A DNA stretch of 64,000 nt, taken from the NCBI RefSeq assembly GCF_018977255.1, contig NW_024704798.1:1-64000 (forward strand), given 5' to 3'. How positions within the stretch are numbered: the first letter of the stretch is position 1; the number at the start of each line of letters is the position of its first letter. Both the position numbers and the translations under genes were made by a program. The notes under the pieces are model-generated. The model was given only the letters and a program-made list of their open reading frames with translations, was not told the DNA's origin and did no database searches. The DNA comes from Callorhinchus milii. Lineage: Eukaryota. Shown here in pieces: positions 2,021-62,976 of the stretch.

Positions 2021-2029
2021 GTGGATTAA

Positions 2030-3615
2030 TGCCACCATTATAGTCCACACATGCAACCATTACAATCCAGTCATATCACAATTACGGTACAGTCATGTCA
2101 CTATTAAAGCCCAGTCATGTCACCATTAATATCCAATCATGTCACCTTTTCATTCCAGTCATGCCTCAATTAGAGTCCATTCGTGTCACCGTTACCGTCC
2201 GGTCATGCGACCGTTGCAGTCAAGTTATGTGACCAAAAGAATCAAGTCATGTCACAATTTCACTCCAGTCATGTCACCAATACATTCTCTCATGTCAACA
2301 TTACAGTCCAGTCATATCAACTTTATAATCCAGTCAAGCCACCATTGCAGTCGAGTTGTTTCAACATTACAGTCCAGTCATTTCACCATTGCAGTACAAT
2401 CTTTTCAAAATTACAGTCCAGTCGTGTCACAATTATAGTGCAGTCATGTCACCATTACAGTCCTTTCATTTCACCACTACAGTCTCGTCATGTCACCGTT
2501 ACAGTCCAGTCATGTCAGCATTACATCCAGTCATGTCACCATTACAGTCCAGTCATGTCACAATTACAGTCCATTCATGTTACCATTGCAGTCCAGTCAT
2601 GTCACCGTTATAGTCGTTTCATGCCACCATTGCAGTCGAGTCATATCACCATCACAGTCCAGTCATGCAAAGATTGCATCCAATCTTGCCACCATTAAAG
2701 TCAAGACATGTCAATGCAACACTCCAGCCATGTCATATTTACAGTACATCCATAAGAGACCTTTCGTGTCACCGTTACAGTCCGGTCATGAAACCGTTGC
2801 AGTCAAGTTATGTCACCATTAGACTAAAGTCATGTTACAATTACAATCCAGTCATGTCACCAATACATCCTTTCATTTCACCATTACAGTTCAGTCATGT
2901 CAACTTTATAATCCAGTCATGCCAACATGGCCAACGAGTCATTTCACCATTACAGTCCAGTCATGTCATCATCACAGTCTTGTCATGGCACCATTACAGA
3001 CATGTCATGTCAGCATTGCAGTCCAGTCATGTCAACATCAGAGTGCAGTCATACGACCATTGCAGTCCAGGCATGCCACAATTACAGTCCAGTCACGTCA
3101 TCATTACAGTCCATTCATTTCATCATGACAGTCCAGTCCTGTCACAATTATAGTCCACTCATGCCACCATTACATTCCAGTCATGTCACCATTACATTCC
3201 TGTCGTGTCAAATTTACAGTCCAGTCATGCCACCGTTGCAGGCCAGTTATGTCAGCATTACAGGCACGTCATGTCACCATTTGAGTCCAGTCATGTGACC
3301 ATTACAGTCCAGTCAAGTCACTGCTCCAGGCCAGTCGTGCCACCGTTGCAGTCGTGTTATGTCACCATTAATGACAAGTAATGTCACCATTACTCTCCAG
3401 TCATTTCACCATTACAGTCGAGTCATATCACTGTTATAGTCCAGTGATGCCAGCATTGCAGTCGAGTCACGTCACGATTAGATTCCATTAATGCGACCAT
3501 TACAGTCCACACAAGTAACAGTTACAATCCAGACATATCATCATTAACGTCCAATCATGTCACCATTAATTTCCAGTCATGTCACCCCGCCAGACCGATG
3601 TCACCATTTCAGTCC
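2030..3615 (+). repeat. Degenerate 22-bp tandem array, consensus CAGTCCAGTCATGTCACCATTA (roughly 70 units)
   Basis: Unit visible directly; explains the overlapping MSPLQSSHVTITVQSCHHYSPV-type ORFs in all three plus frames. Confidence 0.95.
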
Positions 3616-7127: not shown

Positions 7128-7442
7128 TGTAGCTCAGTGGTTACTGCACTCGCTTTACAAGTGAGAGACCTGAGTTCAATTCCAGGCAGAGGGCGAAACC
7201 TTGGGCAAGTTTCCTTACTCCACACAGAGCCTAATAATAATCCCTCCAAAACCAAAAACAATAATAAATTGGTCATTTTCAATCCACGACTGTTCGTGGG
7301 ACATTGCTGTGCGCAATTGGCTGCCGCTTTCGCCCACAAATATACAATCAACTCACTTTACAGTATATTCTCTGAAGCGCTTTGGGACGTCCTCCCGACG
7401 TGAAAAGCGCTATATCAAATGCTAGGATTATTATTATTATTA
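7128..7442 (+). mobile_element. Near full-length tRNA-derived SINE (Deu-like core, L2-like 3' tail, (TTA)n end)
   Basis: tRNA-like head TGTAGCTCAGTGG...GAGTTCAATTCC; core GGGACATTGCTGTGCGCAATTGGCTGCCGC; tail AAGCGCTTTGGGACGTCC...AAGCGCTATATCAAATGC(TTA)n; near-identical copy at 62660. Confidence 0.9.
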
Positions 7443-11249: not shown

Positions 11250-11490
11250 AGGAGGCGTATTGAGTGGTGTGCAAAACAGAGGACATTGCCAGCAAAAGGA
11301 TTTCAAAACAAATCTTTGAGAACACTATTTTGGATAGATAGATTTCTTATTGCTATAGGGATTAAGGAATATGGGGAAAAGGCAGGGTTCAGTTATTAGC
11401 TGGAGTTAGATTAGAAGATCAGCCATGATAGAATGGCGGGGCAGGCTCGAAGGGCCGAAAGGCCTACTGCTGCTCCTACATGTTACGTTG
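11250..11490 (+). mobile_element. CR1 LINE 3' end fragment
   Basis: Characteristic tail GATCAGCCATGATAGAATGGCGGGGCAGGCTCGAAGGGCCGAAAGGCCTACTGCTGCTCC. Confidence 0.75.
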
Positions 11491-12289: not shown

Positions 12290-12460
12290 ACGTCTTATCC
12301 CACAAAGAGTCGTGGATTGAAAATGACCAATTTTTTTGTTTTGGAGGGATTACTATCAGGCGTGTGGATTAAGGAAATTTGCCAAAGGTTTCGCCCTGTC
12401 TGGAAATGAACCCGGTGTCTCGATTGCAAGGCGAGTGCTCTAAGCACTGAGCTACAGGAC
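12290..12460 (-). mobile_element. SINE copy, same family as 7128 (5' half)
   Basis: Reverse complement of the tRNA-like head and linker (CACTGAGCTACAG at ~12445). Confidence 0.8.
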
Positions 12461-14809
12461 TCAAAGCTGCTATACAAATGTAATTTTGTACTGTATAAAC
12501 CTAATGTTTCGCAAAGAGCTTTTCACATCCAGAGGACGCGTAAAACGGCTTTAAGGATTTACTGACAATGGAGAAGGAACGACAGATGAAACCTTCAACT
12601 AAACAGCACGTCCGCAGCACAGCATTGCAGTGTATTACACAAACACAAATTCCATTACTTTCAAGTCCTAATGTGGGTTTGTGCCCAAAAGCTTCTGTTT
12701 CAGAGCAAGGAATTGTGACTTTTGCTGACACAACTTCACCCATCTTGACTGTTTTTGGCGAACGATTAATCAATTTTAGTGAAGATTCATATCCTTCAAT
12801 GTGAACTGTAAGTTTAAAATGTCTAACACAGAGACTTCGTTCCTAGAACAAAATCATCTAGAGGTTTTGAATCTGAAAGTCAGTGTGCAGTGTGAGTGGG
12901 AGCCTTGTCAAAACAGTAATGTACTATCACATTTGTAACTGCTTTCAAGTGGTGGCAAATAATTTCTCCTCGTTGGGCTCACACTTTTATTGAATTCTAT
13001 ATCTTCCCGATTGCATATTAGCAATTATCGTGACAGTAATAAAATGGTAACATTTGGAAAACTGCTCTGCTTGCTAGATATTTAATACGCTCCTTCCCAA
13101 GGAAAATATTGTTCAACGTATCCCTATTATATGTTATCAGAGGCAGGCCAGGCTGAGGTTATCTTGTGTGCTCAAGTCAGCCAACAATTCAGAAGCTGCA
13201 GAGAGACTAATTGTGAATTCAGTCTGATGGAGGGATACCCTTAAGAAAGTCAATGACCACTGTACAAATTTCAAAAGCTGAGACCAGACACAATCATAAA
13301 CCATGACAGTAATCATTAGAAGGTGATATTTCATATATATATAATATATATATTCATGCTACAGGGGCTAAACGGATTCAGGTCAAATTTAGGCCCATTA
13401 GGCCCAAAATTCTATCGCATTGCACACTATGAGATTTATGTTGTTATCAATAACAATGATAATAATCACTGTGTTTGGTTTAGTCCCTCTCACGTCACCA
13501 GGACCTTTGAAGAGGTGTCTGGGCCAACGTAGCAGATCAATTACCCACAGCAGGAATTTGGGCTGTATGATCTCCCATTGAGGTGCTGCCCGGCTCAGAT
13601 TGTTCAGCTCAGCACAGGCAGGAGATAAAGCTCTGTCAGTGTATAAAACATGGTGCTATAAATATTCTAACGCAGAGCTGCATGTTTCTATATTTAAATA
13701 GCCGTGTATCTGAAGCTGTTTCTGGGTGAGGGGCTGATGAACGTGGGACGGAAAAAGCTGCTGGTCACCGGAGCGAAGAACCAACTCAAGCGGAACTGTC
13801 GTTGCCATTTTTGTTCTCAGCAAAACTGTACCTGAAGTTACACGTTTCACTTAACAGCTCTTGTTTAATGCTGAGTTACTGGGAATCTGAATAATTTCGA
13901 AAGCAGCGGCAAGGCACAATTAACACAAAAGGAACAGGAAAGAGAGGAATCAAACAGCGCAATTAATTTTAACATTTTTTATTGATGCTTCAGGCAAAAA
14001 ATATAGAGAATCTGGAGATAGTATGAATGAGGAGCAGATACAAAAAATAGCTTCAGATTAAAATCAAGGTACAGAGTACCACAGGCACTGTCTTTCTGTT
14101 TCATTACACCACACAAATGGTAATCACAAATAAAGAACATCAGAGAGGCGTGAATGTACCATTATTATTCATTATTACCAAAGTCACAATGTAACACAAA
14201 GTAGCAATAAGAAAGGCTTCTAAACTTCAGGTAGTTGCCTAAAAAATAGTATACTTTCAGCGGATTTGTACAATGGGTGAAAATAGACATCACATAATCT
14301 GTCACGAGGCACAGTTGTTACACATAAACGGATGCGACACACTGGTGAAGCTGATCTTAAGAAACTCATTGTGCTTATTTTTGTCTCTATGTATCCGCAC
14401 AGATACGCGCACAAACATACAAACACAGATACAAACATACACATGAGTCCAACTGATTCTGTGTGAATCTGAGTTTGTCTGCTGGGACTGAAAAAGGCAG
14501 AAAGCCTTCGACATGCTTTATATTGTCCACAATAACTCACAGATACACTAAATCTTTAAATAACCATTGCCCCTTGCCTGTGTCCATAGCAGGTGAGCAT
14601 ATGCCAGGTGTGATAGGCTGTGTAGGGGTGATAGAATATTTTGATCACCCTACACACAGCCCAGTCACAAGGATCGTGGCCTGTAGGTGCAGGTTGAGAT
14701 TCGCAGCAGAGTGGTTGCAATGAGCATCACTATCAGGATTCCCATGGACCAAGTATTTAAAAGCAGCTGTTACACCGCATCATGGCGTCAATGCATTTAC
14801 TCTCCTCAC

Positions 14810-14940
14810 CTTAACTAGAGTGACGGTGGCGCTGTAGAAAATATTCAGGAAGAAGAAGATGATGAATTTGGAAGCAGTAGGCCAGATGTTGTCACATTTA
14901 ACTGCTTGAAAACTTTGCAGAATTATCTCGATTGGGAAAG
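14810..14940 (-). CDS. Second (duplicated) IgH transmembrane exon TM1b: (A)[43 protein letters not shown]
   Basis: 131 nt, same length as TM1a, open frame, acceptor cctcacag and donor AAG|gtgagg intact; expression unknown. Confidence 0.7.
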
Positions 14941-15380
14941 CTGTGAGGACAAATAAGGGCAAATATCTTCAGAGCGAAATGAAACCTGAGTCAATTCTTA
15001 TTTTTCCTGTTGGATTATTAATGTATTTTCAGTTTGATAGTCAATCCCTTTGTTAAGCTGCACAGAAACATATGCAGATTCTTCCAAACTTTTAATATGA
15101 AGAGAAATAAAGAAAACAATTGTTTTATTATTTGTTCCTCTCAATTATAGAATTTAGAGAAGAATCTGTGGAACACTTGCCAAAAATTTCAGGAAATACA
15201 TAATGAAGGAAATGCTCCCATTGAGACTGTGCTGGTCGTAAAAGGACAGATCTACTCCAGTCCTCCAATTCCACCTTCCTGTCTGTTCTATTGCAAGTTC
15301 ACATCGTCACTGTTCAAATACCATTTAGAATTCCTTTACATTTAGATATTGATGAAGAACCTTCTTTTCTAAAAAGTTCA

Positions 15381-15540
15381 TGGCTGAAACTGATAGATTT
15401 TTAACAATAGAGGGATTAGGGGATATGGAGATAGGGCAATTTATTACAGATAGGTCTGAAGATCAACCATAATCTTATCAAATGGCGGGGCAGGCTCGAG
15501 GGGCCGAGTGGCCTAAACCTGCTCCAAATTGTTATGTTCT
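15381..15540 (+). mobile_element. CR1 3'-tail insertion specific to duplication unit A
   Basis: ATGGCGGGGCAGGCTCGAGGGGCCGAGTGGCC tail; absent at the equivalent site (~19840) in unit B. Confidence 0.75.
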
Positions 15541-16239
15541 CGATATAAAATTCGACTGAGCTTTTATATTTCACGGTGATTTTCTTGGATGTTTTATATA
15601 CATGTGTCGCCTTTCAGTGCATCATTCTTACAAAACTTTAATAAATTTGAAAGCTTGTATTTGCTTCTCTTCCCTTTCTCTTTTACCGTCTCTTTTTCGA
15701 GAGCAGCCACAATGTTTGAAGCGGAACCTCATCACTGTAACGTCAATCACAGGCGTCATCTTTATTGATCTTTGTGAATCTGCTCAAAATCCTCTCAGCT
15801 GCTCGTACATCCTTTATTTAATAAAATGCCCAGAACCGCACTCTGTACTCCACCCAGAATCCTGCTAATTTCATATTTAATTGACATTCATATTTCATAT
15901 TTAAGTGACCTTTTGATATATGGTCTATCGACCGATAATACTCCAAATTTTCCACACTGCCCTGAAACAGAAGCTTTTCCTTCTGTTTCAATATAGAACT
16001 GCAATTCCACTTTTCAGCCAACTCAGCTAAAAGGTCTGTAATTTTAAGCAATTGCCCATGTTGCTCCTGACTGTGACCCACACCCCTATTATGCTATCAT
16101 CAATAATCTATAAATAGCAACATGTCGATTTCAAAACCGTTCATATTATAGTAAAGCAGTGGAGGATCCGGCAAAAACGTCTGTGTAAATCAACTAAAGC
16201 AATTCAGGATTAAATGTAACAGGATTCATCCAGAGCGAT

Positions 16240-16925
16240 ATTGACTGTGTGTTGGCCTGGGTGAGCGTGAGTGTGTGTGTGTAGCCCTGTGTTGAAGTGA
16301 GTGGTTTGTGAGTGTATGTGGGCATTGATGGATGCGAGAGAATCTGGGTTTTTGTGGGTGTGTGCGAATGTGTAAGGTCCTTGTTGAGTGTGAGTGTACA
16401 TGAGTTTTGAACCTGGGTGGATTTGAGTGTGTTTGAGTGTGTATGGATTTCGGTGACAGTGTGTGGGCCTGCATGGAATTTCTTATGTGACAGTGTGTGT
16501 GAGCCTGGATGGAATTCAGTATGTATAATTGTGTGGGAGCCTTGGTGGATGTGAATGTGTAGGTGTGGGATCCTGGTTGTGTGATTGTAAGTAAGTGTGA
16601 GTGGGCCTGGTTGCGTGTGAGTGTGTATGGAACTGTATGGAAGCCTATTTGTGTGAGTTTCGCTGCCTTAATTGATGTAAGGGTGCGTATGTGTTGGCGC
16701 CTGTACGTGTGTGTGCGAGTGTGGATGTTGGTGCGAGTATGTGCGAGTTTGTGTGATCCTAGGTGGATGTTTGAGTGTGTGAGCCTGATGTGGAGTTTGT
16801 GAGTCTGTGTTTGTGTTGTCTGTGTGTTTGGGAACCTGGTGGACATGTGAACGATTGTGGACGTTGGTCGACATGATTGTGTGTGTGAGGGTGTGTGGAT
16901 GTGAGTGTGAATGAATGCGTTTACA
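16240..16925 (+). repeat. GT-rich low-complexity tract (paralog at 20570-21215)
   Basis: Degenerate (GT)n/GTGA repeats in both duplication units. Confidence 0.85.
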
Positions 16926-17503
16926 TACAATGTAAAAGTACGGCTAAGCGTGTGTTTAAGTGAACATTTCCATCCCGGAACAGTTCTGTGTAAGAAGTAT
17001 TTACTTTAAAGGAAATGTAGTATAAAAGGACGCTGCTTACAGCAGAGATGCTGTTGCATGCGGATTGCGATGCTATTCGGTGGAAATGAAAGTATCATGG
17101 AAAGGAACAGGTGCAGCTGACTTGTGCAATTCTAAATGAAACTGCAAATAAAATCCAGTACTAGATTGGGTGGTAGCAATTAATGTAGATTAGTTTGGGA
17201 GCATTAGCGCCTTTTTTTGATCAACCCAGTTTCTGACACGTGTCAACCCATCAAACTGCTTAATACTCACATAACAATCTGATAGTTTATTAATTGATGT
17301 TCACATCGCCTCAAAGAAAGGATGTATCTCTCCTTATTATAGAAGTTGTCTGTGTAATTAGTTGTAAATCATGCCCGCTGTAGCTGACTCATCAGTACAA
17401 CTCTAATCTTTGTTTGAGTTACTTTTTTATGAAACAAAACAGGCAATGCAATGGTAGGGAGGCGCATGCCTAAGAGATAAAGAAACATGGTATTGAGAGA
17501 CAC

Positions 17504-17613
17504 TCATTGACAGGCATTGACGGTGTCCGTCAGGATAAGGGAAAAGTTTACAACACTCGGTTTCCCGCTGGATTTATTAACTTTTCTGGTCAGGGTCTTC
17601 AGTGGGAATGTTT
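17504..17613 (-). pseudogene. Orphan copy of CH4 3' end plus secretory tailpiece ([35 protein letters not shown])
   Basis: Ungapped match to 21798-21907; truncated at the duplication junction with no splice acceptor; internal donor GTAAAC changed to GGAAAC. Confidence 0.88.
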
Positions 17614-18607
17614 AGGCCTATTAGGCCGAGATTACTATTGCATTGCAGCCTGTGAGGTTTATGTCGTTATCAATAACAATGATAAGTATCATTGTGTTTG
17701 GTTTCGTGTCTCTCACACCAGCAGGACGTCCCAATGATTTTCACAGTATAACTGTGAAGAGGTGTATGTGCCAAAGTCGCAGCAGGAATTTGGGCTTAAT
17801 GGTCTCCAATTGAGGTGCTGCACTGTTCAGATTGTCCAGCTCAGCACAGGCAGGAGATAAAGCTCAGTCAATGTATAAAACAGATTGCGCTCTCACTTTG
17901 TGCTATAAATACTCTAACACAGAGCTGCATGTTACTATATTGGAACAGTCATGTGTCTGAAGCTGTATCTTGGTGAGGTGCTGATGAATGTGCGACGGAA
18001 AAAGCTGCTGTTCACTGGAGCGAAGGACCATCTCAAGCGGAACTATCATCGCCTTTAGTGTTCTCAGCAAAGCTGCAACTGAAGTTTGACATTAAATTTA
18101 ACAGCTTTTGTTTAATGCTGAGTTACTGGGAATCTGAATCATTTGGAAATCAACAGCAAGGCACAATTGACACAAAAGGAACAGGAAAGAGGAATCAAAC
18201 AGATCATTGAATTTGTAATATTTTTATTGATGCTTCTGGCAAACAACAGACAGAATCTGGAGATAATATGAAACCGGAGCAGAATCAAAAATTCAGATTA
18301 AAATAAGAGGACAAATTATCTCAGCCACTAACTTTCTGTTTCTTTACACCAATAAAATGGGAAACAGCATAGAGAGAATATCAGAGAGGCGTGACAGTAA
18401 CAACTTCAGTTATTGTTACCTAAAGGCACATTTCTAAAATAAACTAACAATAACAAAAGCCACTAAAGTTCAAGTAGTTGCACAATACAATGTTTAATTT
18501 AAGTGATTTGTACAATGAGTGAAAAATGGCAGCGCGTAATCTTTCACACGACGCTGTTGTTAAGCACAAACGGACGGGACACATCGTTGAAGCTGATCTT
18601 AATTAAT

Positions 18608-18616
18608 TCATTTTAC
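18608..18616 (-). CDS. IGHM: IgH TM2 exon (VK*)
   Basis: Minus strand ttttattttccag|GTA AAA TGA, in phase 0 after TM1a; AATAAA at 18228-18223. Confidence 0.85.
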   Translation of the reverse strand, partial: VK

Positions 18617-18712
18617 CTGGAAAATAAAAATAAAGATGTCATGATATTTAAGGTTGTGTTTATAAGTGTATATCAATTCAAACAGGTAAACACACACAAA
18701 CATACAAACATA

Positions 18713-18925
18713 CGCCTCATAATAATCCCTCAAAAAAACAAAAAAAATTGGTCATTTTGAATCCATGACTGTTTGTCGGACATTGCTGTGCACAATTGGC
18801 TGCCGCGTTGGCCCACAAATATACACTCAATTCACATCACAGTATGTACTGTGAAGCGCTTTGTGACGTCCTCCCGACGTGAAAAGCGCTATATCAAATG
18901 CAAGGAGTATTATTTTTATCATTAT
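18713..18925 (+). mobile_element. 5'-truncated SINE in the TM1a-TM2 intron, specific to unit B
   Basis: Same core and tail as 7128; absent from the equivalent region of unit A (~14420). Confidence 0.85.
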
Positions 18926-19255
18926 TATGCACACACACAAGGATACACAAGAGTCCAACTGATTCTGTGTGAATTTGTATTTGTCTGCTGGGGCTGACAC
19001 AGACAGTAATCCTTGCACCTTGCCTGTGTCTATAGCAGGTGAGCATATGCCAGGTGTGATAGGGTGTGCAAGGGAGATGGGATATTAGGAACACCCTATA
19101 CACAGCCCAGTCACAAGAATCTTGGCCTGTAGGTAGAGTTTGAGTTTGACAACAGAGTGGTTGCAATGAGCTTCACTATTAGGCTTTTCATGCACCGAAT
19201 ATTTAACAGCAGCTGTTGCACGACATCGTGGCCTCAATGCATTTGCTCTCCTCAC

Positions 19256-19386
19256 CTTAAAAAGAGTTACGGTAGCGCTGTAGAATATGTTCAGGAAGAA
19301 GAGGATGATGAAGGTGGAAGCAGTAGGCCAGAGATTATCACACTGAACTTCTTGAAATCCTTCCAGCATCATCTCGTTTGGCAAAT
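19256..19386 (-). CDS. IGHM: IgH transmembrane exon TM1a: (D)[43 protein letters not shown]
   Basis: Matches the IgM TM signature NLWxTASTFIxLFxLxxFYSxTVTLFK; acceptor cctcacag, donor AAG|gtgagg; phase fits the CH4 internal donor at 21859. Confidence 0.92.
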
Positions 19387-21702
19387 CTGTGAGGATATAA
19401 AAAGGGAAAAATCTTCAGAGCGCATTGACACCTCAGACATTTCTTATTTTTCCTGTTATATTATTAACGTATTTAGAGATTCCGAGTTAATTAAGGGCCC
19501 TCTCCGTCTATTAAACAACACTGAACTTCATGCCATTTCTTCCAAACTTTTAATTCAAAGGCAAATGAATAAAAACATTATTTTATCGTATACTCCACTC
19601 AATATAGATTCCGCGGAAGAATTTGAGGAACACTTTGGGAAAGCTCAATTTGTGGAAATGCAGAAAGAAGGAAGTTCTCCCATTGAGACTCTTCTGGTAG
19701 TAAAAGGACAGATCTACTCCAATCCTTCAATTCCACCTTTCTTTCTGCCCTATTGCAAGTTCACATCGTCTCTGTTCAAATATTATTTGAAATTCCTTTA
19801 CATTATAATGCTGAGGTGAAGATTTCTCTATTCTAAACAATTCTCGATATAAAAATCGACTTTGCCATTATATTTTACAGTGATTTTACTGGACCTCTTA
19901 TACCCATTTTTATGGATACTATCGCTTTTCACTGTATCAGCCTTTCAAAACTTAAATACATTTGAAAACTTGTATTTGCTGATCTTCCCTTTCTGATTTA
20001 CCTGCACATTCCTTTCGAGAGCTGCCGCGCTATGTGAAGCTATTCCTCAACACATTAACGTCAGTCACAGGTACCATCTCTATTGACCTTTGTGAAACTT
20101 CCCAAAACCCTCTCAGGAGCTCTTATTTCCTTTGTTTAATAAAATGCCCAGAACCGCACACTGTACACCACCCATAATCCTGGTAAATTTATATTTAATT
20201 AACAGTCGATTGCCCAACAAAAAACACAGGGTCCATTTTTACTCCATTTGATATGCGCTCCCATCGACTATTACTCCAGGTTTTCCACTCGTCACTTATA
20301 ACAGAAGCAGTTACTGAATATTGAACTGCAATTCCACTTTTCGGCCAACTCAGCTAAGGGGTCTGTAATCTTATACAATTGCCAAAGTTATTCCTGACTG
20401 TGTCTAACAACCCTATTAGACCATCATCTCTTTTATCATGGATAGCCATGTCGATTTCGCAATCGTTAATATTATTGTAGGAACCGGCACAAACGTCTCT
20501 GAAATTAACTAAAGTAAATGAGGGTTAAATTTAAAAAGGTTCATCCATAGCGCTATTGATTTTGTATTGTCTTGGGTGAGTGTGAGTCTGTGTGTGTGGT
20601 CATTCGTGGATGTGTATATATGTGTATATGTGCGTGTTCCTGCATGTATGTATTTGTGTGGCGACATGGGTTGATGTAAGCGTGTGTGAGTGTTTGCCTT
20701 GGTGGATGTAAATGTGTCAAGTTGTCTGTGCAATTAATTGTAAATATGGGTATGTGAGTGTGTTTAAGTGTGCGTGGGCCTGGGTGAGTGTGAGCTTACG
20801 GGGGCCTGGATGGAAGTGGGTGTGTGTGAGTATCTGTGGGCCTTAATGGAAATCAGTGTGAATGTGTCGGCCCAGTAAGTGTGTGTGCGGAAATGTGTAG
20901 GGGATTGTTTGGATGTGGATATAAGTGAGTTTGTGTGAGCCATGGTGGATGTGTGAGTGGGTGTGAGTGTGTGCGGGACTGGGTGGACGTGAGTTTGCGT
21001 CTGCAAGTGTCTGCATGTGTGGACCTGCGGGGATGTGTGAGTGTATGTGTGTGTGGCCCCTGGGAGGATGTGAGTTTGTGTGTCTGTGTCTGTGTGTGTA
21101 TGTGTGTGTGTTTGTGAACATGGATGGACACGTGAGAGTGTGTGGGCCTGGATGGATATGATGGTGTGTGTGAGTATGTGTGGATGTGAATTTGAATGAA
21201 TGCATTTTGTTACAATGTACGTGTATGGCTAAGCTTATGTTTAAATGAACATTTTCCTGTATTCGGATCAGTTTCAGTGTGAGAAGTATATACTTTTAAT
21301 GGAAATGTAGCAATAAAAAGCCGGAGTTTACGTCCGCGATGTTATTACACGTGGAATGCGATGCTATTCGGTGGGAAAGAAAATATGTTGAAAAGGAACA
21401 GGTGTAGCTTCACTGTGCTATTCTGAATCAAACTGCAAATAAAGTACAGTCTGAGTTGAGCTGTAGCAAGTAAAGTAGAATAATTTCGGACGGGTAACTT
21501 TTTTTTGGTCACCCGGGTGTCTGACACCTGCAAACCCATCACGATGATTAAGAGTGTACAAACCAACCTGACTGTCCTATTAACTTGATGCTAACATCCC
21601 CCCAAAAATGAGTGTATCTCTCCTTTCTATGGAATGTGACAGTGAAGTTAATTAATTGCAAATCATCCTCTCTGTACCTGTCACATCAATGCAACTATAA
21701 TC

Positions 21703-21708
21703 TTTATT
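21703..21708 (-). terminator. Poly(A) signal of the secreted IgH transcript
   Basis: AATAAA on the minus strand ~90 nt after the secretory stop codon. Confidence 0.7.
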
Positions 21709-21797
21709 TGAGTTACTTGTTCATGAAAACAAACAGCCAATGCAATGGGAGGGAGGCGGTTGCATAAGAGAATAGGCAACATGGTATTGAGGGTCAC

Positions 21798-22189
21798 TCA
21801 TTGACAGGCATTCACGGTGTCCATCAGGACAAGGGAAATATTTACAAAACTCGGTTTACCGCTGGATTTATTAACGGATCTGGTCAGAGTCTTCATTGGG
21901 AAAGTTTCATGTCCGACCACACAGGAGTAGGAGTTTCCTCTGCCCCAGTCTCCGGCTGAGATGGACAACATGCTGTACATGGAGTAGTTGCGATCTGCAC
22001 TTTCTGCCATCACATCAGTGTTCTTGTATTTACTGCCATCAATCAACTGGTCATTCTCAGTCCACTGCACAAAGATCTCTTTGGGAGCGAAGTCCTTCAC
22101 CAGGCAGGTGAGGGTGACAGACTGCTGAGCAGACAATTCTTCTGCCGACGGGAGGAGGAGATACACTGAAGGTCGTTTCACGTGCTCCA
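21798..22189 (-). CDS. IGHM: IgM-like CH4 exon with secretory tailpiece GKPSFVNISLVLMDTVNACQ*
   Basis: C1-set domain (PSVYLL...VTLTCLVKDFAPKEIFVQW...YSCVVGHE); acceptor ttccaacag; internal donor G|GTAAAC at 21860/21859; tailpiece has an N-x-S site and penultimate Cys. Confidence 0.95.
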
Positions 22190-23712: not shown

Positions 23713-24302
23713 CTGGAATAGATTAAACGATAGGTCATGTTTTGCTCCATGGACATACATATTGCTATGTGAAGCTTATACCAATATTGAAAAAAAACAT
23801 TGAGCTCAGCCACGATATGGACACTTCTCACTCATTGACCTTTCTATCTTCCTAGTCAAGATAATCATATCTTTTTTTCCTTCAGAAAGATAGAAATTAT
23901 GTAACCTACTCAATCACTGCTTTTGATATATTCCACTAAATCAGCAATCGGGAAATGAGTGTGGTACCATCAGACCGTAGAAGGTTTTCTGTGATGGCAG
24001 TGTTGAAATATCCTGGTGAAGAAAATTGAGATGCCCATTTCTACGATGCTGATTGTTCTACCCTTAACATTAATGATTATAATTATCGTTGCGTTCCATA
24101 TAGTGCCTCATCACTTCCTCGGGACGTCTCCAAGTGCTTTACAGACAATGCTGTCGTGTCAATTAATTTTTCTCTGTGTGAAACGAGGCAGCCAGTGGCG
24201 CCCAGGAGATACACCAACTCATTGACAACCCGTTCCCGACTTACTGCTGGATAAGCAGAGGCAAGTGATGTAACAAAAAGTGCCCAACATCTTGCTCTGT
24301 CT

Positions 24303-24361
24303 GGGAAACGAACCCACGTCTGTCGCTTGCAAGGCGAGGGCTCTAACCACTGATCTACAGG
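24303..24361 (-). mobile_element. Isolated tRNA-like SINE head in the intron between the two CH2-like exons
   Basis: Reverse complement resembles the 7128 head (CTGTAGATCAGTGGTTAGAGCCCTCGCCTTGCAAGCGA...GGGTTCGTTTCC). Confidence 0.65.
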
Positions 24362-24436
24362 CCACCGGTGTAAATGTCAAAGGACACTGAGAGGCACGTT
24401 GCTGCCATGTGTACCAGCTGCTGCTGTTCCTCCTAC

Positions 24437-28300: not shown

Positions 28301-28639
28301 AAACTAAGTCAGAGCTCAATGTGTCGCTGAATAAAGTCGTGACTGGGGTATGTGGTGTAGCTGAGGAATGAGATTGTGAGCAACACATTAATGCTGATAC
28401 TAAAATAATGACCTTCACTATTATTTCTGTAATATCGGAGTCGATTGCACTGCTGTACCGCCAATCTCATTCCTGTAATATAAACCCACTTTACTCTCAG
28501 AGTCATCCCCTATCGTTCTAAATCGCAAACATTTTCCATATGTACGAAAACGGATTTAACTGCATAAAAAAATAGTAATCCTTGCACTTGATATTGTGCT
28601 TTTCACATCTCCTCGACTTCTCAAAGGGATTCACTGAAT

Positions 28640-28880
28640 AGACTGTAAAGCTAATTGATTATATTTGAGGGTGAACCGCGGCAGCAAATTGCGCACAGCA
28701 GTGTCCCACCAACAGTCGTGATTGAAAATGACTAACTTATTATATTACTGTTTTGGTTTTTGGAGGGATTATTGTCAGGAATTGTAAGGAAACTTTCCCA
28801 AGATTTCGTCCTTCCTTGAATAGAACCCAGGTCTCTCGCTTGGAAGGCGAATACTCTAACCACTGAGCTATAGGACGCCA
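28640..28880 (-). mobile_element. SINE copy in the J-C intron
   Basis: Reverse complement of the SINE core and tRNA head (GCGCACAGCAGTGTCCCAC; CACTGAGCTATAGG). Confidence 0.8.
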
Positions 28881-34200: not shown

Positions 34201-34827
34201 GTGTTAATAATATATAGTACATACATGTAATACACTTGTATCACAGAGTGTAATGTAACAGGGATATACTGGCTCATTATCCTGAGAATAATAGGTTTGC
34301 CTCTTTCACTAAGCTTGTGCTGTGGATTTTCATTCCCTGGAGGGTTAAGCCGGTGTCAAACTATCTGAATTTTCTGCCGTATTCTTACATATAATATAAA
34401 TAAAATTAGCATCTAATACAAATGCAGGCAAGTTCTCAGTCTCGTTATATTGTTATATAGGTTTGGGCTTTTTTGTGTCCCTTGCAATTCAAGACTGCGA
34501 ATTTAAAGGAAACCTTTGTTTGCTGATGCTGTAGAACAATCAATGTTCAAGCACAGTTTATCAGCAAAATGCTGTTCAAGTCATTGCATTTTATGTGTAA
34601 AGTCTTTCTGCTGAGCGCACTCAGGAAAGACGGTTCTCACAGGAGGTGTCAGGCGGCCTTCAGGTGGGGCGGAAACTCAGAGCACAATTGTCAGGAAGCA
34701 GCTGTGATGGTGTACAGTCAGTCATTGATCAGATTCCTGCCCTCACACCGCACAGCCACAGCCTGAGCCTTCATACAGTGTTCCCCATCACACCTGCCAC
34801 AGCAGGAACAGCAGCAACAGCAGCACC

Positions 34828-35150
34828 TGGTCATCTCGTACTATCTGGTCATCTCACACTGTCTGGTCATCTCACACTGTCTGGTCATCTCACACTCTCT
34901 GGTCATCTCACACTCACTGGTCATCTCACACTCACTGGTCATCTCACACTGTCTGGTCATCTCACACTTTCTGGTCATCTCACACTGTCTGGTCATCTCA
35001 CACTATCTGGTCATCTCACACTGTCTGGTCATCGCACATTGTTTGGTCATCCCACACTGTTTGGTCAGCTGAAACTGTCTGGTCATCTCAAACTGTCTGG
35101 TCATCTTAAACTGTCTGTTTGTCTCAAACTGTCTGATTATCTCAAACTGT
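34828..35150 (+). repeat. 18-bp minisatellite (CTGGTCATCTCACACTGT)n, copy 1
   Basis: Directly visible; produces the (SGHLTL)n ORF. Confidence 0.95.
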
Positions 35151-37731
35151 CGGACGAAATAATAAGAGTAATAATAAAAAGTAACATTAATACGTAAAAA
35201 TGTTTCTAATTGACCCAATTTCTTACATGTCTCAAACTTCTTCACAGGTTTTCTTTGAAACACAGTAAAGTCTCTTTCATTTCAGCTTCTCTCAAGGATT
35301 CTCCTTACTCAGCTCTGCGATTTGCTGTAGGCTCACCGACCACGCCTCTCTCTTTGGTGACTGACAACCATCTGATTGATATCGCAACTGCTCTATGTGC
35401 CCCACATTGGTTCTTTGGAAATCACAGGCCTTCTGTCGCTTGCTTTATGCTTTATTGAAACAATGGAGAAAAATGTTTGTCTTATTATCCTGTGGTGTGA
35501 TTCAGAAATCTGCTGACATTCAAAAATATTATGTAAAGTCACTAGAATTTCATGCATTACATTTTTGCCGCCTGGAGCAGAAACATTCTGCATCTGGCGA
35601 TATACCTGGGTTCAGAGTCCGGATCACAGCTGGGTGGAGGTGGATGTCCCACCTACTCATGTGGCCTTCAAGAACCTGTCATTCGCCTCTATGTCTTGGC
35701 TAACGTTTAGTTGCTTTGAGTCAGCCAACTAATCTCAAAGATAAGTTATCTTGTAATTGTATAATGCAACAAGATAATCTTGAATTTCACTACTAAGCAT
35801 ATCCCTTGCTGCTTAATCATAATAATAATAAACCTTGTTTTTCTGTAAAGCATTTATTGTGCCGGAACGACAATGAATTTTGGAGGCGACTGCAGCATTC
35901 GCATCAATGTCCCTCAATCAGTCGTTAAGCAAATTATCAATTTAATCTCGATATTTTTGTTGGTAGAAACGCCCTTCCCTTTTCCAGCAATTTCACGTTA
36001 GCATTAATGTTCAACAGAAAAAGGAGACTGAATCGCTATTTTTCATCTGAACCAGGTGAACACCAGCACCAACAATGCAGCAGAAACCAATCACTGCTTT
36101 ATTGTGTCAATTTAAACGGTATTATATCTGGTCGTCTCTGGCCCAAACCGAGGGAAACACTGAGCCGCCCATCATATGTCAGCACACGCCAGCAGTCATA
36201 TCACATCACTCAGCCTCCAGCATAGTCGAGTGCACAGCCCTCAGCATCGTCCACCACACAACACCAATCATATCACATCATACAGTCTCCAGCATAGCCC
36301 AAGACACAGCCATCAGCATAGCCCAGCTCACAGCCTGCAGCAAAGCCCAGCATACAGCAAGAATCATTTCACATCACACAGCACCTGGCATAGCCCAGCT
36401 CACAGCCACCAACATAGCTCAGCTCACAGCCAACAACATAGCTCAGCTCAGAGTCTGTAGCATAGCCCAGCAGACAACAACCAGCACAGCCAAGCTCACA
36501 GCCTGCAGCATAGCCCAGCACACAACAACCAGCACAGCCCAGCTCACAGCCTGCAGAATAGCCCAGCACACAACACGAATCATTTAACATCACACATCCC
36601 CCAGCACAGCCCAGCTCAAAGCCTCCATCCAGCATGAGACACCCAGCACAGCCCAGACTACAGATCGCAACTTAGCCTCGCGTACAGCCCCCATCATTTG
36701 CACAATAACACGCAGTTTCCTCGTGGCCCGAGGGTAGGGTGACAGTATCATATGATTCAAAGGCGGGGAGACTTACAAAATATTGAGCTGACGACAGTTC
36801 CTGCTTCTGTCAGACCAGGATAAGGTTTTGCATTAATGGGTGTGTTTCCTTGACCAACGGGTGTCTTTGACAATCGTAATGTTCTTCTTTATTTTCTTGC
36901 TGATTGAACGTAGTAAAGATTTACCTCAAAGATTCACCGGCTCACTTTACCTCACCCCTTAACCCAATGGCCCCTCACTTCACACACTCAAACCCACACT
37001 CACATTCACACAACATCAGACACAAACACTCTCAGATCCACACATAGGCCTCACACAATCCTCAAACACACACCCTCGCACACGCACACTCATGCACAAA
37101 CATTCATACACAAAGTCTCACACGTACACATTAACACACACTGTAAAACATAATCCTCTCTCTCTCCCACAACATCAGGCAATCCGTCACGTTCCCCCAC
37201 ACGATGAAACACACTTCAGACACACAGTGTCAGGCACACACACCATCGCTCACACACTTCTCAAGACATACTCTGCAAGGATTATTATTATATTTTTATA
37301 CACTCACACACAAACGTCTCACACACAAACTCGCATACCCTCTCTCACACACCCTCACAACCAACTTAGTGTTATTAATCCACAAGGACTTAGAAAATTC
37401 TTCACTTAATAAGAAATATAAACGTTGTCATTTGAATTATCAAAAAAATATAACACGCGTATGTATAACGTACACAAATGTCAGTGTGATAGGTTTCCGC
37501 AAGGATACCATACAAGTTGCTAAAAATGATTAATTTACGTAAGTTGCACCGCTCAGGGAGAGCACATGTTATCCACATGGCTGAATCTCGTTCGACATCA
37601 TGTAATAAATCTTCTAAGTCAAGCGTTCACGTTGGTATAAATCAGGCTTTGTTTTTTTGCTCTTGAAACCCATATATTTATTCTGATCTCCTGTCTATAC
37701 GGAGACGAGGTACCATCGGTTCACTGTCGAG

Positions 37732-40012
37732 ATGACAATAGCACCAATACACAGGATACAAAACATTTACTATCCGGTTCTCGCTGCCATTGGAGTTCCT
37801 GGCAAGTTGTTTAACTTAATCGTTAGTTAGACTAGTTTGCAGTAAAGTTTGCAGCCTGACTCAGGTGGTAGCATTTCTCCTCTGAATCAGAAAGATGTGG
37901 TTTGCAGACCCCGACCCATTGATCTTTGCTGGAGGATCCGCGATTTGTATACGTATTTAACAAGTAATGTCCTACTTGATCCTTCAGATATCAAAGATTC
38001 TGTGACACAGCTAAAAAAAGGGCGGATTTGATTGCGGGTTGTTGGGCACACCTACTTGCAAAAAACACTTCGCGGTATGCTTGTTAATTTACTTTATATC
38101 TGTTTGTCTGTTTTTAATTGCCGCATTTGCCAACAAATAGGCTTTTCAGTAAACTTAAACGCTTTGCAAAAATAATAATATTCCTCACATTTGATATTGC
38201 ACTTTGTAAGTATTCCATACAACGCAAAGCGTTGCAGAGAATATAGTAAACAGAGAATTGTCTTTGCACTGATAGATTAAACTCAGCAGCCACTTGCGCA
38301 TTGCAGAATACCACAAACAACCATGGATGGAGCGGCCAGATGTTCATTTTAATGATTATTATCCTCGGAAATGTGAACTACCAATTGACTAACAAACGGG
38401 TGTCTGCTTACTGCTCGGTAAATGGAAATATTAAGCGAAGCGTATTGATATGTTTATAAGTAGTGAATAGTGTCGTATCAAATGCAAGTGAAATTGCTAT
38501 TATTATTATGTGTTACATAGCGGGAATAAGAGAAGATGATCGGAAAATCGCAACTGATAATATTATATTAAGCTATGGGTTTAGCCAATGATTATCCATA
38601 CGTTTGACTCATTTCTTAGTGTTCTTGCCTCTCAGTTAGAAGTTTGCAGGTTGGAGCCCACAGCACCTCATTGAGCTCAGAGTCCGAACCGTGATAGTCC
38701 ACGCTTTAGGCCTGTGGCGTTTTCTGGCAACTTAACCACAATTTTAAACTGTAAAACTGTGTGGGTTTGGCTGCCCCATTTCGCCCACAAAATGTACCGT
38801 TAATTCACTTTTCAGGTTATTTTGTGAACCGCTTTGAGACCTCACAACGAAACGTTAAATTGTTGTGTCGAATGCAAGCATTTTTATTAATTATTATTAA
38901 TATTATTACTATTAATGAGGGCCGGATGACAGCCACATAAGGAACAGTTTTATGATTGTCTTTCAGAAACATAACTTATAACAATTATATTGAAATCCGA
39001 TGTTTAAAATTGAGTACCTTATTTGATATACAATTCCAACTTTCGATTGGCAGCAAAAAATATCGGAATTGTCAAGCAATAATACCTTCAGCGATGAGAA
39101 ATCTCTCTCTCTCTCTCTCTTTCTGTCATTATCTCTGTGTGTGTGTGTCTGTGTGTATGTCTGTATCTGGCTTTGTCTGTATGTGTCGACTGCTTTCGAT
39201 TTCTTGATGCTGTATTAATTGCAGATGTGTTAATTAAACGCAAGTTGTTGTACTGTGGTGATGGGCATTTATCTGTCTCGCTCTCTCCAGCAAACCTGGT
39301 GTCGATTGAAATTCTGTCTCGTGGGCGGTGTGGACTCTCCAAATGTATCAGTCACTATCTGGTGGCCATGTCCACAGCAGATCTGTTGGTGATTATCACA
39401 TCAGTGATTTTCTATCCAGTTATTCCTTCTTATTCACCCAATTCATTCCTGTCCATCACACCTGTTTGTAGGCTAGTTATAGTCTTGTTGATTTCATCAA
39501 CGTCAACTTCTGTCTTGTTAACTGTGGCTTTCACCTTTGATCGATATGTGGCCATTTGTTGCCAAAACCTGAAAACAAAATATTGTTCAGAAAAAACTTC
39601 TGTTCCAGTGATAACGGTATTGACTGCGCTGTTCGTAGTGATAAGTATTCCCTGGGATTTTATATTTGAACCAAAGTATATCATTAACGATATACCGTGG
39701 GGTTGCGAACCGAAAGCAAGCTATTACACTCTCTGGTCCTCTCACACTGTCTGGCCATCTAACACTCTCTGGTCATCTCACACTGTCTGGTCATCTCACA
39801 CTGTCTTGTCGTCTCACACTCTCTCGTCATCTCACACTCTCTGGTTATCTCACACTGTCTGGTCACCTCACACCGTCTGGTCCTCTCACAGTGTCCGGTC
39901 ATCTCACACTGTCTGGTCATCTCACGCTGTCTGGTCATCTCACTTTCTGGTCATCTCACAATGTCTGGTCATCTCACAATGTCTGGTCATCTCACACTGT
40001 TTGGTCATCTGA
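37732..40012 (+). pseudogene. Truncated GPR139/142-like GPCR duplicate: exon 1 37732-37801, exon 2 from 39291, homology ends ~39730 (after TM4), then reads into the 18-bp array
   Basis: Exon 1 MTIAPIHRIQNIYYPVLAAIGVP; exon 2 close to the 47422 exon up to EPKASY; TM5-7 missing; V-to-E change in TM1. Confidence 0.85.
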
Positions 40013-40075
40013 AACTGCCTGGTCATCTCAAACTGTCTGGTCATCTCAAACTGTCTGTTTGTCTCAAACTGTCTG
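39731..40075 (+). repeat. 18-bp minisatellite (CTGGTCATCTCACACTGT)n, copy 2, at the duplication junction
   Basis: Directly visible; the following flank matches 35150 onward. Confidence 0.95.
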
Positions 40076-42219
40076 ATTATCTCAAACTGTCGGATGAAAT
40101 AATAAGAGTAAGAATAAAAAGTAACATTAATACGTAAAAAAATTTCTACTTCACCCAAATTCTTACATGTCTCAAACTTCTTCACAGGTTTTCAAGGATT
40201 CTCCTTACTTATCTCTGCGATTTGCTTTAGCCTCAGCGACCACGCCTCTCCCTTTGGTGACTGACAATCATCTGATTGATATTGCAACTGCTCTATGTGC
40301 CCCACACTGGCTCTTTGGAAATCACAGGCCTTCTGTCGCTTGCTTTATGCTTTATTGAACAATGGAGAAAATTGTGTGCCTTAATGTCCTGTGGTGTGAT
40401 TCCCAAATCTGCTGACATTCAAAAATATTGTGTAAAGTCACTAGAATTTCATGCCTTACATTTTTGCCGCCTGGAGCAGACACATTCTGCAACTGGCTAT
40501 ATACCTGGGTTCAGAGTCCGGATCACAGCTGGGTGGATGTGGATGTCCCACCTGCTCATGTGGCCTTCAATAACCAGTTATTCTCCTCTATGTCTTGGCT
40601 ATCGTTCAGTTGCTTTGAGGCAGCCAACTAAACTGAAAGCTACGTTATCTTGTTATAGTATAATGCAACAAGATAATCTCGAATTCCACTACTAAGCATA
40701 TCCCATGGTGCTTAATAATAATAATAATAAACATTGTTTTTCATGTAAAGCACTTAATGCGGTGGAATGACAATGGATTTTGGAGGCGACTGCAGCAGAC
40801 GCATCAATGTCCCTCAATCAGTCATTAAGCAAATTATCAATTTAATCTCGATATTTTTGTTGGTAGAAACGCTCTTCCCTTTTCCAGCAATTTCACGATA
40901 GCATTAATGTTCAACAGAAAAAGGAGACTGAATCGCTATTTTTTTATCTGAACCAGGTGAACAACCGCTCCAACAATGCAGCAGAAACCAATCACTACTT
41001 TATTGTGTCAATTTAAACGGTATTATATCTGTTCGTCTCTGGCCCAAACCCAGGGAAACACTGAGCCGCTCATCATATGTCAGCACACACTAGTAATCAT
41101 ATCACATCACTCAGCCTGCAGCATAGCCCAATACACATCCCTGAGCATCGTCCACCACACAACGCCAATCATATCACATCATACAGCCTCCAGCATAACC
41201 CAAGACACAGCCATCAGCAAAGCACAGCTCACATTCTGCAGCACAGCCCAGCACACAGCCTGCAGCAAAGCCCAGCATAAAGCAAGAATCATTTCACATC
41301 ACACAGCCCACAGCATAGCCCAGCTCACAGCCACCAATACAGCCAAGCTCACAGCCTCCATCCAGCATGAGACACCCAGCACAGCCCAGACTACAGATCG
41401 CAACTTAGCCTCGCGTACAGCCCCCATCATGTGCACAATAACACGCAGTTTCCTCATGGCCCGAGGGTAGGGTGACAGTATCATATGATCCAAAGGAGGG
41501 GAGGCGCATAAAATACTGAGCTGACGACAGTTCCTGCTTCTGTCAGACCAGGATAAGGTTTTGCATTAGTGGGTGTGTTTCCTTGACCAACGGGTGTGTT
41601 TGACAATCTTAATGTTCTTCTTTATTTTCTTGCTGTTTGAACGTCGTAAAGATTTACCTCAAAGATTCACCGACTCACTTTACCTCACCCCTGAAACCAG
41701 TGGCCCCTCACTTCACACACTCAAACCCTCACTCACATTCACACAACATCAGACACAAACAATCTCAGATGCACACGTAGGCCTCATACAATCATCAAAC
41801 ACACACCCTCGCACACGCACACTCATGCATAAACATTCACACACAAAGTCTCACACGTACACACTAACACACACTGTAAAACCTGTTCCTCTCTCTCTCC
41901 CACAACATCAGGCAATCCGTCACGTTCCCCCACACGATGAGACACACTTCACGCACACAGTGTCAGGCACACACACCGTCGCTCACACACTTCTCAAGAC
42001 ATACTCTGCAAGGGTTATTATTATATTGTTATACGCTCACACACAAACGTCTCACGCATACACTCGCATAGCCTCTCTCTCGCACCTTCACAACAAACTT
42101 AGTGTTATTAATCCACACGGACTTGGAAAATTCTTCACTTGAAAAGAAATATAAAACTTGTCATTCGAATTATCAAAAAATATAACATGCAGGTCAATAA
42201 TGTACACAAATTTCAGTTT

Positions 42220-43190
42220 CAAATTAACAGAATCAGTAATTGGTCAGCCCTTAAGCCTGCTTTTCTGACTGGAGGGAAGTGTACAGTGGCGTTCCCCAGT
42301 GATCGCTGTTTGGACCACTGCTCTTCTTAATGTACAAAAATTATCCGGAGTTGGGTATAGCAAATACTATTTCCAAGTTTGTGGACGACGGAAAGTCAGG
42401 AAGGGTGACAAACAGTGAGAGGGATAGGAGCCAACTACTGGAAGACAAAGACAGAATGCTAAAATGGGCAGACACAAAGTAGTTGAGTTTCAGTGGAGAG
42501 AAATGCGAAGCAATGTATTTTGCGTAGAAAGAATGAGGGAAGGCAATACAGACTGGTAATACAATCTTAAGGGGGTAAGAGAACAGAGACACCTAGAGGT
42601 GCAGGTAAATCAATCCTTGAAGGTGGCAGGACAGGTAGGTAAGGCTGCAAAAAGGACAAATGGAATTCTCGGCTTCATAAATAGGGGCATAGTGTACAAG
42701 AGTGAGGAGTCTATGATTAACTTATATAAATTCGTCCATAGGCCTCAGTTAGAATACTGCGCCCAGTTCTGGGCACCACACTATAGGAAGGATGTTAAGG
42801 CATTGGAAAGGGTGCAGAGGAGATTTACGAGGATGTTAGCAGGGATAAGGGACCTTGATTATGAGGAAGGATAGAGAGGCTGGGTTAATTCTAAAAATTG
42901 GAGCAGCGAAGTTTACGAGGAGACCTGGTAGTGCTATTCAAAACCATGAGGGTATTTGATATGTTAGCAAGAATAAAACTGTTTCCACTGGTGGGTGAAT
43001 CAGTGACTGAAGGTCACAGAATCAAAAAACTACCTAAAAAAAGCAGAGGGGATGTGAGAAGAATTTTTTTCACGCAGCGAGTTGTTCGAATCTGGAAGGC
43101 TTTGCCTGAAAGGGCGGTCGAGGCCGATTCGATAACTAATTTTAAAAACGCGGTGCATGGGTATTTGAGGAGGACGCCTTTTGGCCAATT
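42220..43190 (+). mobile_element. CR1 LINE RT 3' fragment within a ~1.9-kb block (42218-44146) absent from the first GPCR duplicate
   Basis: GILGFINRGIVYKS...RPQLEYCAQFWAPHYRKDVKALERVQRRFTRM and RRIFFTQRVVRIWKALP; frameshifts present. Confidence 0.9.
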
Positions 43191-46083: not shown

Positions 46084-46120
<37 letters not shown>

Positions 46121-53494: not shown

Positions 53495-53626
53495 NNNNNN
53501 NNNNNNNNNNNNNNNNNNNNNNNNNNNNNNNNNNNNNNNNNNNNNNNNNNNNNNNNNNNNNNNNNNNNNNNNNNNNNNNNNNNNNNNNNNNNNNNNNNNN
53601 NNNNNNNNNNNNNNNNNNNNNNNNNN
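53495..53626. other. Assembly gap (N run)
   Basis: Run of n characters. Confidence 0.99.
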
Positions 53627-62659: not shown

Positions 62660-62976
62660 CTGTTGCTCAGCGTTAAAGCACTCGCTTTGCAAGTGAGAGA
62701 CCTGAGTTCAATTCCAGGCAGAGGGCGAAACCTTGGGCAAGTTTCCTTACTCCACACAGAGCCTAATAATAATCCCTCCAAAAACCACAAACAATAATTA
62801 ATCGGTCATTTAAAATCTACGACTGTTTGTGGGACATTGCTGTGCGCAATTGGCTGCCGCGCTCGCCCACAAATATACAGTCAATTCGCTTTACAGTGTG
62901 TTCTGTGAAGCACTTTGGGACGTCCACCCGACGCGAAAAGCGCTATATCAAATGCAAGGATTATTATTATTATTAT
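62660..62976 (+). mobile_element. Near full-length SINE, same family as 7128
   Basis: Near-identical head, linker, core and (TTA)n tail. Confidence 0.9.

Follow-up and report, generated by a model that had tools for sequence, protein, structure and literature searches.

A 4.3-kb tandem duplication at the 3′ end of an IgM-type heavy-chain cluster of Callorhinchus milii

Can a single antibody gene carry two alternative membrane anchors? The question is posed by a stretch of 64,000 nucleotides from Callorhinchus milii (NCBI RefSeq assembly GCF_018977255.1, contig NW_024704798.1, positions 1 to 64,000; ‘the window’ in what follows), the minus strand of which holds one unrearranged immunoglobulin (Ig) heavy-chain cluster, of IgM type. 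An original prediction, made from the letters of this DNA alone, proposed a 4.3-kb tandem duplication of the 3′ end of the heavy-chain gene, with a breakpoint inside the exon for the fourth constant domain (CH4), and suggested that the duplicated transmembrane (TM) exon might provide a second anchor. Self-BLAST and MAFFT alignment bear out the duplication, in that two collinear copies are found to abut; the second anchor fares badly. The reading that we favour, and to which we would give about an even chance, is an ancient tandem duplication of the 3′ module that took place within one IgM-type cluster, the distal copy of which is now a relic.

Two abutting copies of the 3′ module

The copies are direct repeats, collinear and on the minus strand, with unit B running 21907→17611 (4297 bp) and unit A 17613→13388 (4226 bp):

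17611..21907, minus strand: unit B, the proximal copy, from the last 110 nt of CH4 (stop codon included) to ~600 bp of 3′ flank (self-BLAST, MAFFT)
13388..17613, minus strand: unit A, the distal and second copy of the 4.3-kb module (self-BLAST, MAFFT)
17608..17616: duplication junction, where 3′ flank (...GGCCTAAA) is joined to the interior of CH4 (AAAC/ATTCCC...)
18709-18922: repeat resembling a short interspersed element (SINE), in copy B only; it matches six other copies in the window at 73-87% and faces a gap in A
15392-15538: repeat-element fragment, in copy A only; it matches 11337-11489 and faces a gap in B

Read in the direction of the gene, unit B comprises the end of CH4, the secretory tail, the poly(A) site of the secreted form (µs), an intron, the exons TM1 and TM2, the 3′ untranslated region (3′UTR) and poly(A) site of the membrane form (µm) and, lastly, 3′ flank. 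Self-BLAST resolves the homology into three blocks, each with E=0: 13388-14370 against 17611-18612 (76.9% identity), 14561-15379 against 19007-19843 (79.0%), and 15537-17613 against 19841-21907 (71.2%). In a global MAFFT alignment it starts exactly at 21907 in B and 17613 in A, and ends at 17614 in B and 13388 in A; past these limits identity drops to 42-59%, the random level. The 5′ limit falls inside CH4, at codons ...ETFP, and the 3′ limit ~600 bp past the distal poly(A) signal. With the two copies abutting at a single junction where both homologies stop, this is a tandem segmental duplication, and its breakpoint lies inside CH4 as predicted, the homology switching at 17611-17613 within CH4 codons.

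On the coding strand the junction reads GGCCT-AAAC-ATTCCC, the CH4 parent GAAAC-TTTCCC and the 3′-flank parent CTAAAT-TTGACC; at least AAA (TTT on the plus strand) is common to all three strings, so that the TTT microhomology claimed for this join is present both in the junction and in its two parents. The plus-strand strings on which that claim had been built were each recovered at the positions given for them: gggaaagttt at 21898-21907, aaatttaggcc at 13385-13395 and gggaatgtttaggcc at the junction itself.

One rival reading is that two paralogous clusters have been misjoined by the assembler at 17611; IgM clusters are multicopy, with about 10 in C. milii (PMC4279169), and the window does contain gaps elsewhere (25423; 53495-53626). 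However, the join is between non-homologous sequences that share ~3 bp, with no ambiguous base (N) and no repeat at the spot (the nearest N is that at 25423), whereas assembler misjoins occur within long near-identical repeats and not at such sites. A misjoin at a 3-bp overlap of non-homologous sequences is unlikely, and we regard an assembly artefact as a highly improbable account of the locus. Duplication between haplotypes was considered as well, and is ruled out by the ~25% divergence between the copies together with their copy-specific transposable-element insertions. An exact look-up of the open reading frame (ORF) that spans the junction, and of ten neighbouring ORFs, gave no match in public assemblies, in collections that do not hold this genome's ORFs.

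The SINE-like repeat at 18709-18922, being inserted in copy B only, post-dates the duplication. The earlier view that the event is old, or else arose between clusters that had already diverged, holds up.

Signals kept and lost, and the question of a second anchor

The elements of copy B are as follows (a slash marks a splice boundary):

21858..21860, minus strand: cryptic 5′ splice site in CH4, AGCG/GTAAAC, which joins TM1 in frame
21703..21708, minus strand: µs poly(A) signal, AATAAA
19256..19386, minus strand: TM1 exon, 131 nt, with acceptor ...cctcacag/ and donor AAG/gtgagg
18608..18616, minus strand: TM2, ttttattttccag/GTAAAATGA, that is Val-Lys-stop
18223..18228, minus strand: µm poly(A) signal, AATAAA

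Copy B carries every canonical µs/µm element in canonical order. Its secretory tailpiece, GKPSFVNISLVLMDTVNACQ, is the C. milii consensus, with an N-glycosylation site and a penultimate Cys; its TM1 matches C. milii protein P0046 at 78% (tblastn), and its TM2 acceptor is the best polypyrimidine acceptor downstream of TM1. The SINE-like repeat specific to this copy lies just upstream of TM2. Contiguous as it is with CH4, copy B would do the normal job, such that poly(A) addition at the µs site would give secreted chains, and splicing of the CH4 GGTAAA donor to TM1 and TM2 of this copy would give membrane chains ending ...TLFK-VK. In this it is the same as the canonical IgM module (tailpiece in CH4, GGTAAA donor, TM1, TM2 encoding Val-Lys-stop, two poly(A) sites), and the end of its product is like the horn shark IgM tail, ...TLVKVK (P0033). 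The departure from the canonical module is that here the whole of it stands twice in tandem, the second starting mid-CH4 and lacking three of six short signals. The corresponding elements of copy A are:

17504..17611, minus strand: orphan tailpiece, 35 codons open, with TGA at 17506-17504
17566-17561, minus strand: lost cryptic donor, GGTAAA → GGGAAA (GT → GG, the GG at 17564..17565)
17409..17414, minus strand: lost µs poly(A) signal, AATAAA → AACAAA
14810..14940, minus strand: TM1′ exon, 131 nt, open and in frame with the CH4 donor
14360..14385, minus strand: degenerate TM2′ region (...gacaaaaataagCACAATGAG), an alignment gap
13978..13983, minus strand: µm′ poly(A) signal, AATAAA, its 13-nt context GCATCAATAAAAA identical to that in B

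The repeat, its junction and the state of each of these signals are matters of direct observation. A second tailpiece, a second TM1 and a second TM poly(A) site (13983-13978) do lie downstream of the first, as had been noticed, and on recounting the two TM1 exons we obtain the same figure of 23 differences in 131 nt. The orphan tailpiece matches P0005 at 83% (E=1.7e-12, tblastn) and keeps both the N-glycosylation site (NFS) and the penultimate Cys; because it has neither a CH4 body nor an upstream acceptor, it belongs to no normal product. TM1′, which matches P0046 at 64% (tblastn), retains the same splice sites as TM1 of copy B (acceptor cctcacag/, donor AAG/gtgagg). From TM2′ some ~30-40 nt are gone, comprising the polypyrimidine tract, the AG and the first codon, and there is no Val-Lys-stop; no acceptor comparable to that of TM2 was found in copy A, and none that yields a short membrane tail. 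Loss of three out of six short signals, about half, is the expectation at a per-lineage divergence of ~0.13-0.145.

For TM1′ to serve as a functional second anchor, transcription would have to run past the proximal µm poly(A) signal, with TM1′ spliced to the donor in CH4. The product would then have a different TM segment, its helix bearing a Lys towards the outer end; its spacer would be non-acidic and its cytoplasmic end new, and its message would be polyadenylated at 13983. Several features are in keeping with this: TM1′ is open and in frame with the CH4 donor, its acceptor being good and its own donor perfect, the distal AATAAA survives in an unaltered 13-nt context, the ratio of nonsynonymous to synonymous divergence (dN/dS) in the TM1 core is 0.15, and read-through into the intron (...TLVK-VRRVNALTP-stop) gives a short basic tail. 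The obstacles are nonetheless considerable. With the TM2 acceptor and Val-Lys-stop lost, the mRNA would need either that intron read-through or a poor acceptor; TM1′ lies beyond a complete and conserved proximal terminal poly(A) site, which must be passed, and the CH4 donor must choose an exon 6.9 kb away. Furthermore, a Thr→Lys change has occurred in the otherwise invariant TAST, the charge of the spacer is lost, protein evolution has been 6-12 times faster than in B, and the unusable tailpiece is just as well preserved as TM1′. The suggestion of two alternative membrane anchors is therefore not supported, and we consider a functional second anchor improbable.

A further, and weak, negative comes from protein databases. 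No TM1 of the A type was found in sets of 5.8 billion and 1.8 billion proteins by word-indexed searches and exhaustive HMMER, the top match being a C. milii TM1 of the ordinary kind (63%); as the word-indexed searches failed to pick up even proteins known to contain TM1, their negative is a weak one. One might go further still and speculate that a heavy-chain-only IgM, lacking the first constant domain (CH1), uses TM1′ as an alternative terminal exon after read-through of the first membrane poly(A) site, and that it could pair with signalling partners other than Ig-alpha/beta; this strikes us as very improbable, if not quite so much so as a misjoin. Were it true, one antibody gene would have two anchors, the second with a Lys-bearing helix, no acidic spacer and a longer basic cytoplasmic end. 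The locus would bear on the B-cell receptor only if TM1′ is expressed.

Decay and origin of the distal copy

If not an anchor, has copy A simply decayed? Overall, A and B are 21-29% diverged (~25% is typical), and well-aligned intron gives Kimura two-parameter (K2P) distances of 0.27-0.31. Set beside an intron baseline of ~0.29, certain blocks stand out as constrained, with K2P of 0.13-0.20:

CH4 end and tail: K2P 0.13
µs 3′UTR: K2P 0.18
TM1: K2P 0.20
249 nt after TM1: K2P 0.17
~600-bp block after the poly(A) signal: K2P 0.165

Were B constrained and A free, the floor would be about half the neutral distance, ~0.145, and by this measure the conserved blocks appear to be close to the one-copy-constrained floor, at or slightly above it. 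In both copies the CH4-TM1 intron also contains a degenerate zone of ~650 bp (20560-21200 and 16230-16900), which is (CA/CACTCA)n-rich when read on the minus strand and G/T-rich on the plus (GC skew +0.2 to +0.3); at 49-69% identity, it can barely be aligned.

At the protein level the two copies have behaved very differently. Polarised against the tails of 27 other C. milii proteins and the C. milii TM1s P0013 and P0046, replacements in the tail and TM1 number 12-13 specific to A against 1-2 specific to B (relative-rate test, p=0.002-0.007), such that copy A has evolved ~6-12 times faster. The tail changes specific to A (F→V, I→F, V→I and M→T) fall at sites that are invariant in the 27 other tails, and those in TM1 are L→I, T→K within TAST, L→F and F→V. 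Conservation of TAST/TTST and of the hydrophobic TM1 core (TAST/LFFL) extends from sharks to tetrapods. The membrane-proximal charge is −1 in A and −4 to −5 elsewhere. The tail and TM1 coding pieces of copy A contain no indel.

Pairwise dN/dS between A and B is 0.39 in the tail and 0.32 in TM1 (core 0.15, spacer 0.53), and 0.35 overall, with an overall dS of 0.35. Under a simulated null in which A has been neutral since the split and B constrained, the probability of as few nonsynonymous differences (nd) as seen, P(nd≤observed), is 0.04-0.40, and that of as low a ratio to synonymous ones (sd), P(nd/sd≤observed), 0.06-0.14; both frames remain without stops in 42-49% of runs. The simulation does not reject a neutrally decaying A. 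Nor is the preservation of TM1′ a sign of present function, because the unusable tailpiece has been preserved about equally well. A simple Poisson argument for selection on A was dropped, as the fuller simulation leaves the neutral null standing, and gene conversion as the cause of the better-conserved exons is ruled out by a dS (0.26-0.44) that is not lowered.

Four observations weigh against a copy A that has been a relic from its beginning. The pairwise dN/dS of 0.35 (0.15 in the TM1 core) is somewhat under the ~0.5-0.6 expected were A always free; certain settings of the simulation parameters give p ~0.04-0.06; the intact TM1′ frame, splice sites and CH4 join, together with the absence of indels, have a joint probability of ~0.05-0.1 under strict neutrality (combining the simulation, the chance of no indel, 0.46 × 0.54, and four splice dinucleotides kept), which is mildly low, not decisive; and two blocks, one of 380 nt made up of TM1 and the intron downstream of it, the other the 600-bp block after the poly(A) signal, are better conserved than the rest. 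The first of these blocks, TM1 with the following 249 nt of intron, belongs to a 400-nt indel-free stretch of 82-87% identity (19007-19409 versus 14561-14963), the intron part of which (K2P 0.17) is more conserved than the TM1 exon itself (0.20). The second (17614-18225 versus 13388-13970) has 85% identity, with 100-nt windows reaching 91%, and is the best conserved part of the repeat, above TM1. It starts T/GT-rich, and its plus strand has a purine-rich GGAA cluster; as for a gene or RNA family on that strand, no conserved ORF was seen by eye and there is no Rfam match there, the only one in the window being the tRNA head of a SINE, outside this block. The block may combine a downstream poly(A) element with a regulatory element that acts at the level of the cluster.

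We propose the following model for the duplication within the cluster. A single non-homologous join, at ~3 bp of microhomology, would set a second module directly behind the first; the distal copy A, placed past the terminal poly(A) site of the gene, would then drift essentially unconstrained, its exons becoming relic pseudo-exons. We infer that copy A is silent and that the duplication arose inside this one cluster.

A different history would leave exactly the same repeat-and-junction geometry. Copy A might be the 3′ remnant of a once-independent neighbouring sister cluster, if a deletion or illegitimate exchange had brought the 3′ flank of the present cluster up against mid-CH4 of the neighbour and removed the latter's V-D-J-CH2-CH3; the exons of A would have been under selection until the exchange and would have decayed only afterwards. 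Such a history would explain the slight deficit of replacements and the intact orphan tail (frame, NFS and penultimate Cys), although the latter is unusable now, and it fits with disabling lesions in A that are few, with a dN/dS of 0.35 at normal dS (0.26-0.44), indicating purifying selection and not gene conversion, and with a distance between the A and B tails (6/35) equal to that between B and another CH1-less cluster, P0011. On the other hand, the null of neutrality from the start stands, and B stands at least as near to the tail and TM1 of A as any known C. milii cluster does. Moreover, A and B have in common derived TM1 residues, the Cys in ..CDN.. and the Asn in FFLNIF, that are absent from other C. 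milii TM1s; because these are shared, A and B are each other's closest known relatives. We therefore see an origin between clusters as possible but doubtful, and rate it below a duplication within the cluster because the neutral null stands and because it requires a larger, less parsimonious rearrangement.

How old the duplication might be can be gauged from the gene's two CH2-type exons, CH2a and CH2b, which are themselves 85% identical. The introns flanking them show K2P of 0.32-0.41 as against 0.27-0.31 for A and B, and the two duplications are thus of similar depth. As the C. milii genome is reported to be the slowest-evolving among vertebrates (PMC3964593), both are probably very old.

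The duplication is one more small tandem Ig-gene duplication that has left relic exons, and of this particular instance we found no description; a search for literature on duplicated Ig TM exons, or on the 3′ ends of elephant-shark clusters, found nothing specific. The pair CH2a/CH2b of the same gene and the exon-block repeats of teleost IgD are likewise tandem, collinear and ~1-4 kb long within one Ig gene; unlike duplicated CH exons, which are spliced into the product, the duplicated 3′ module, placed after a terminal poly(A) site, makes no obligatory contribution to it. In the rabbit remnant IgD gene (PMC5568218), Ig exons including TM likewise persist in non-functional form downstream of a working µ; there the remains are those of another isotype, whereas in the present case a paralogous copy of the gene's own 3′ end has become the relic. 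As a relic, copy A provides a well-resolved case of the remodelling of a cartilaginous-fish Ig cluster by small non-homologous duplications, and an internal neutral yardstick that picks out the tail, the TM1 core, the intron just after TM1 and the 600-bp block after the poly(A) signal as the constrained parts.

The host cluster and its surroundings

What kind of gene carries the duplication? The cluster has the following exons and segments:

31110-31065, minus strand: leader
30948-~30640, minus strand: V exon, followed by a heptamer/23-bp/nonamer recombination signal sequence (RSS)
~30160 and ~29770, minus strand: D1 and D2 respectively, both flanked by signals
29336-29298, minus strand: J
24766-24437, minus strand: CH2a
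23712-23392, minus strand: CH2b
22758-22447, minus strand: CH3
22189-21798, minus strand: CH4 exon (translation and Pfam C1-set), with the stop TGA at 21800-21798

The constant region consists of four C1-set domains (Pfam), and CH4 is 81-86% identical to C. milii IgM CH4 (tblastn); the closest database matches are C. milii Ig proteins at 83-94% identity, followed by ratfish at 51% and sharks at 41-45%. A C. milii CH2 query matches the window at two sites (tblastn), and one member of the SINE family marks the end of the homology between CH2a and CH2b. Within the window, tblastn with C. milii CH1 (P0005 residues ~130-240) found no CH1 between J and the first CH2-type exon. Just where CH1 would be expected, in the J-CH2a intron, the sequence has one N (25423), which could hide it, and the absence of CH1 is for this reason a property of the sequence as assembled. 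By sequence, then, the host gene is an IgM cluster of the CH1-less, CH2-duplicated type, and closely resembles C. milii IgM clusters.

Loss of CH1 and duplication of the CH2 exon have been described for an IgM cluster of the spotted ratfish, thought to encode a light-chain-free dimer (PMC3149040). The organisation of that cluster (Rast et al. 1998, via PMC3149040) is likewise found here, with V-D-D-J, two CH2-type exons, CH3 and CH4; we found no published duplication of the tailpiece/TM module for a CH1-less cluster of the ratfish type. Framework region 2 (FR2) of the host gene's V domain reads WYRQLPGKQREKL and is hydrophilic at the hallmark positions of the camelid heavy-chain-only V domain (VHH), compared with WVRQVPGKGLEWL in a conventional C. 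milii VH, and a V of this type also occurs in other C. milii predicted proteins (P0011, P0014 and P0049). The hydrophilic FR2 and the CH1-less layout both match the putative heavy-chain-only IgM known from ratfish. Should other CH1-less clusters or other chimaeras turn out to share the duplication, it would help to date this putative heavy-chain-only lineage.

Elsewhere in the window, a 22-bp satellite, ATGTCACCATTACAGTCCAGTC, forms two arrays in the same orientation ~47 kb apart (2029-3586, 71 copies; 50806-52179, 62 copies), which lie to either side of the Ig cluster and of genes for G-protein-coupled receptors (GPCRs). A segmental duplication of ~5 kb (34827-39730 versus 39769-47861, 86-90% identity, the second copy interrupted) contains rhodopsin-family GPCR ORFs, complete at 47361-48365 and partial at 39098-40009. 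A third GPCR ORF, at 57958-58893, is on the minus strand. The tRNA-derived SINE-like family (73-87%) has members at 7229-7440, 12298-12366, 18709-18922, ~24300-24380, 28568-28877, 62761-62977 and 63274-63496, with the tRNA head recognised by Rfam at 28806-28877.

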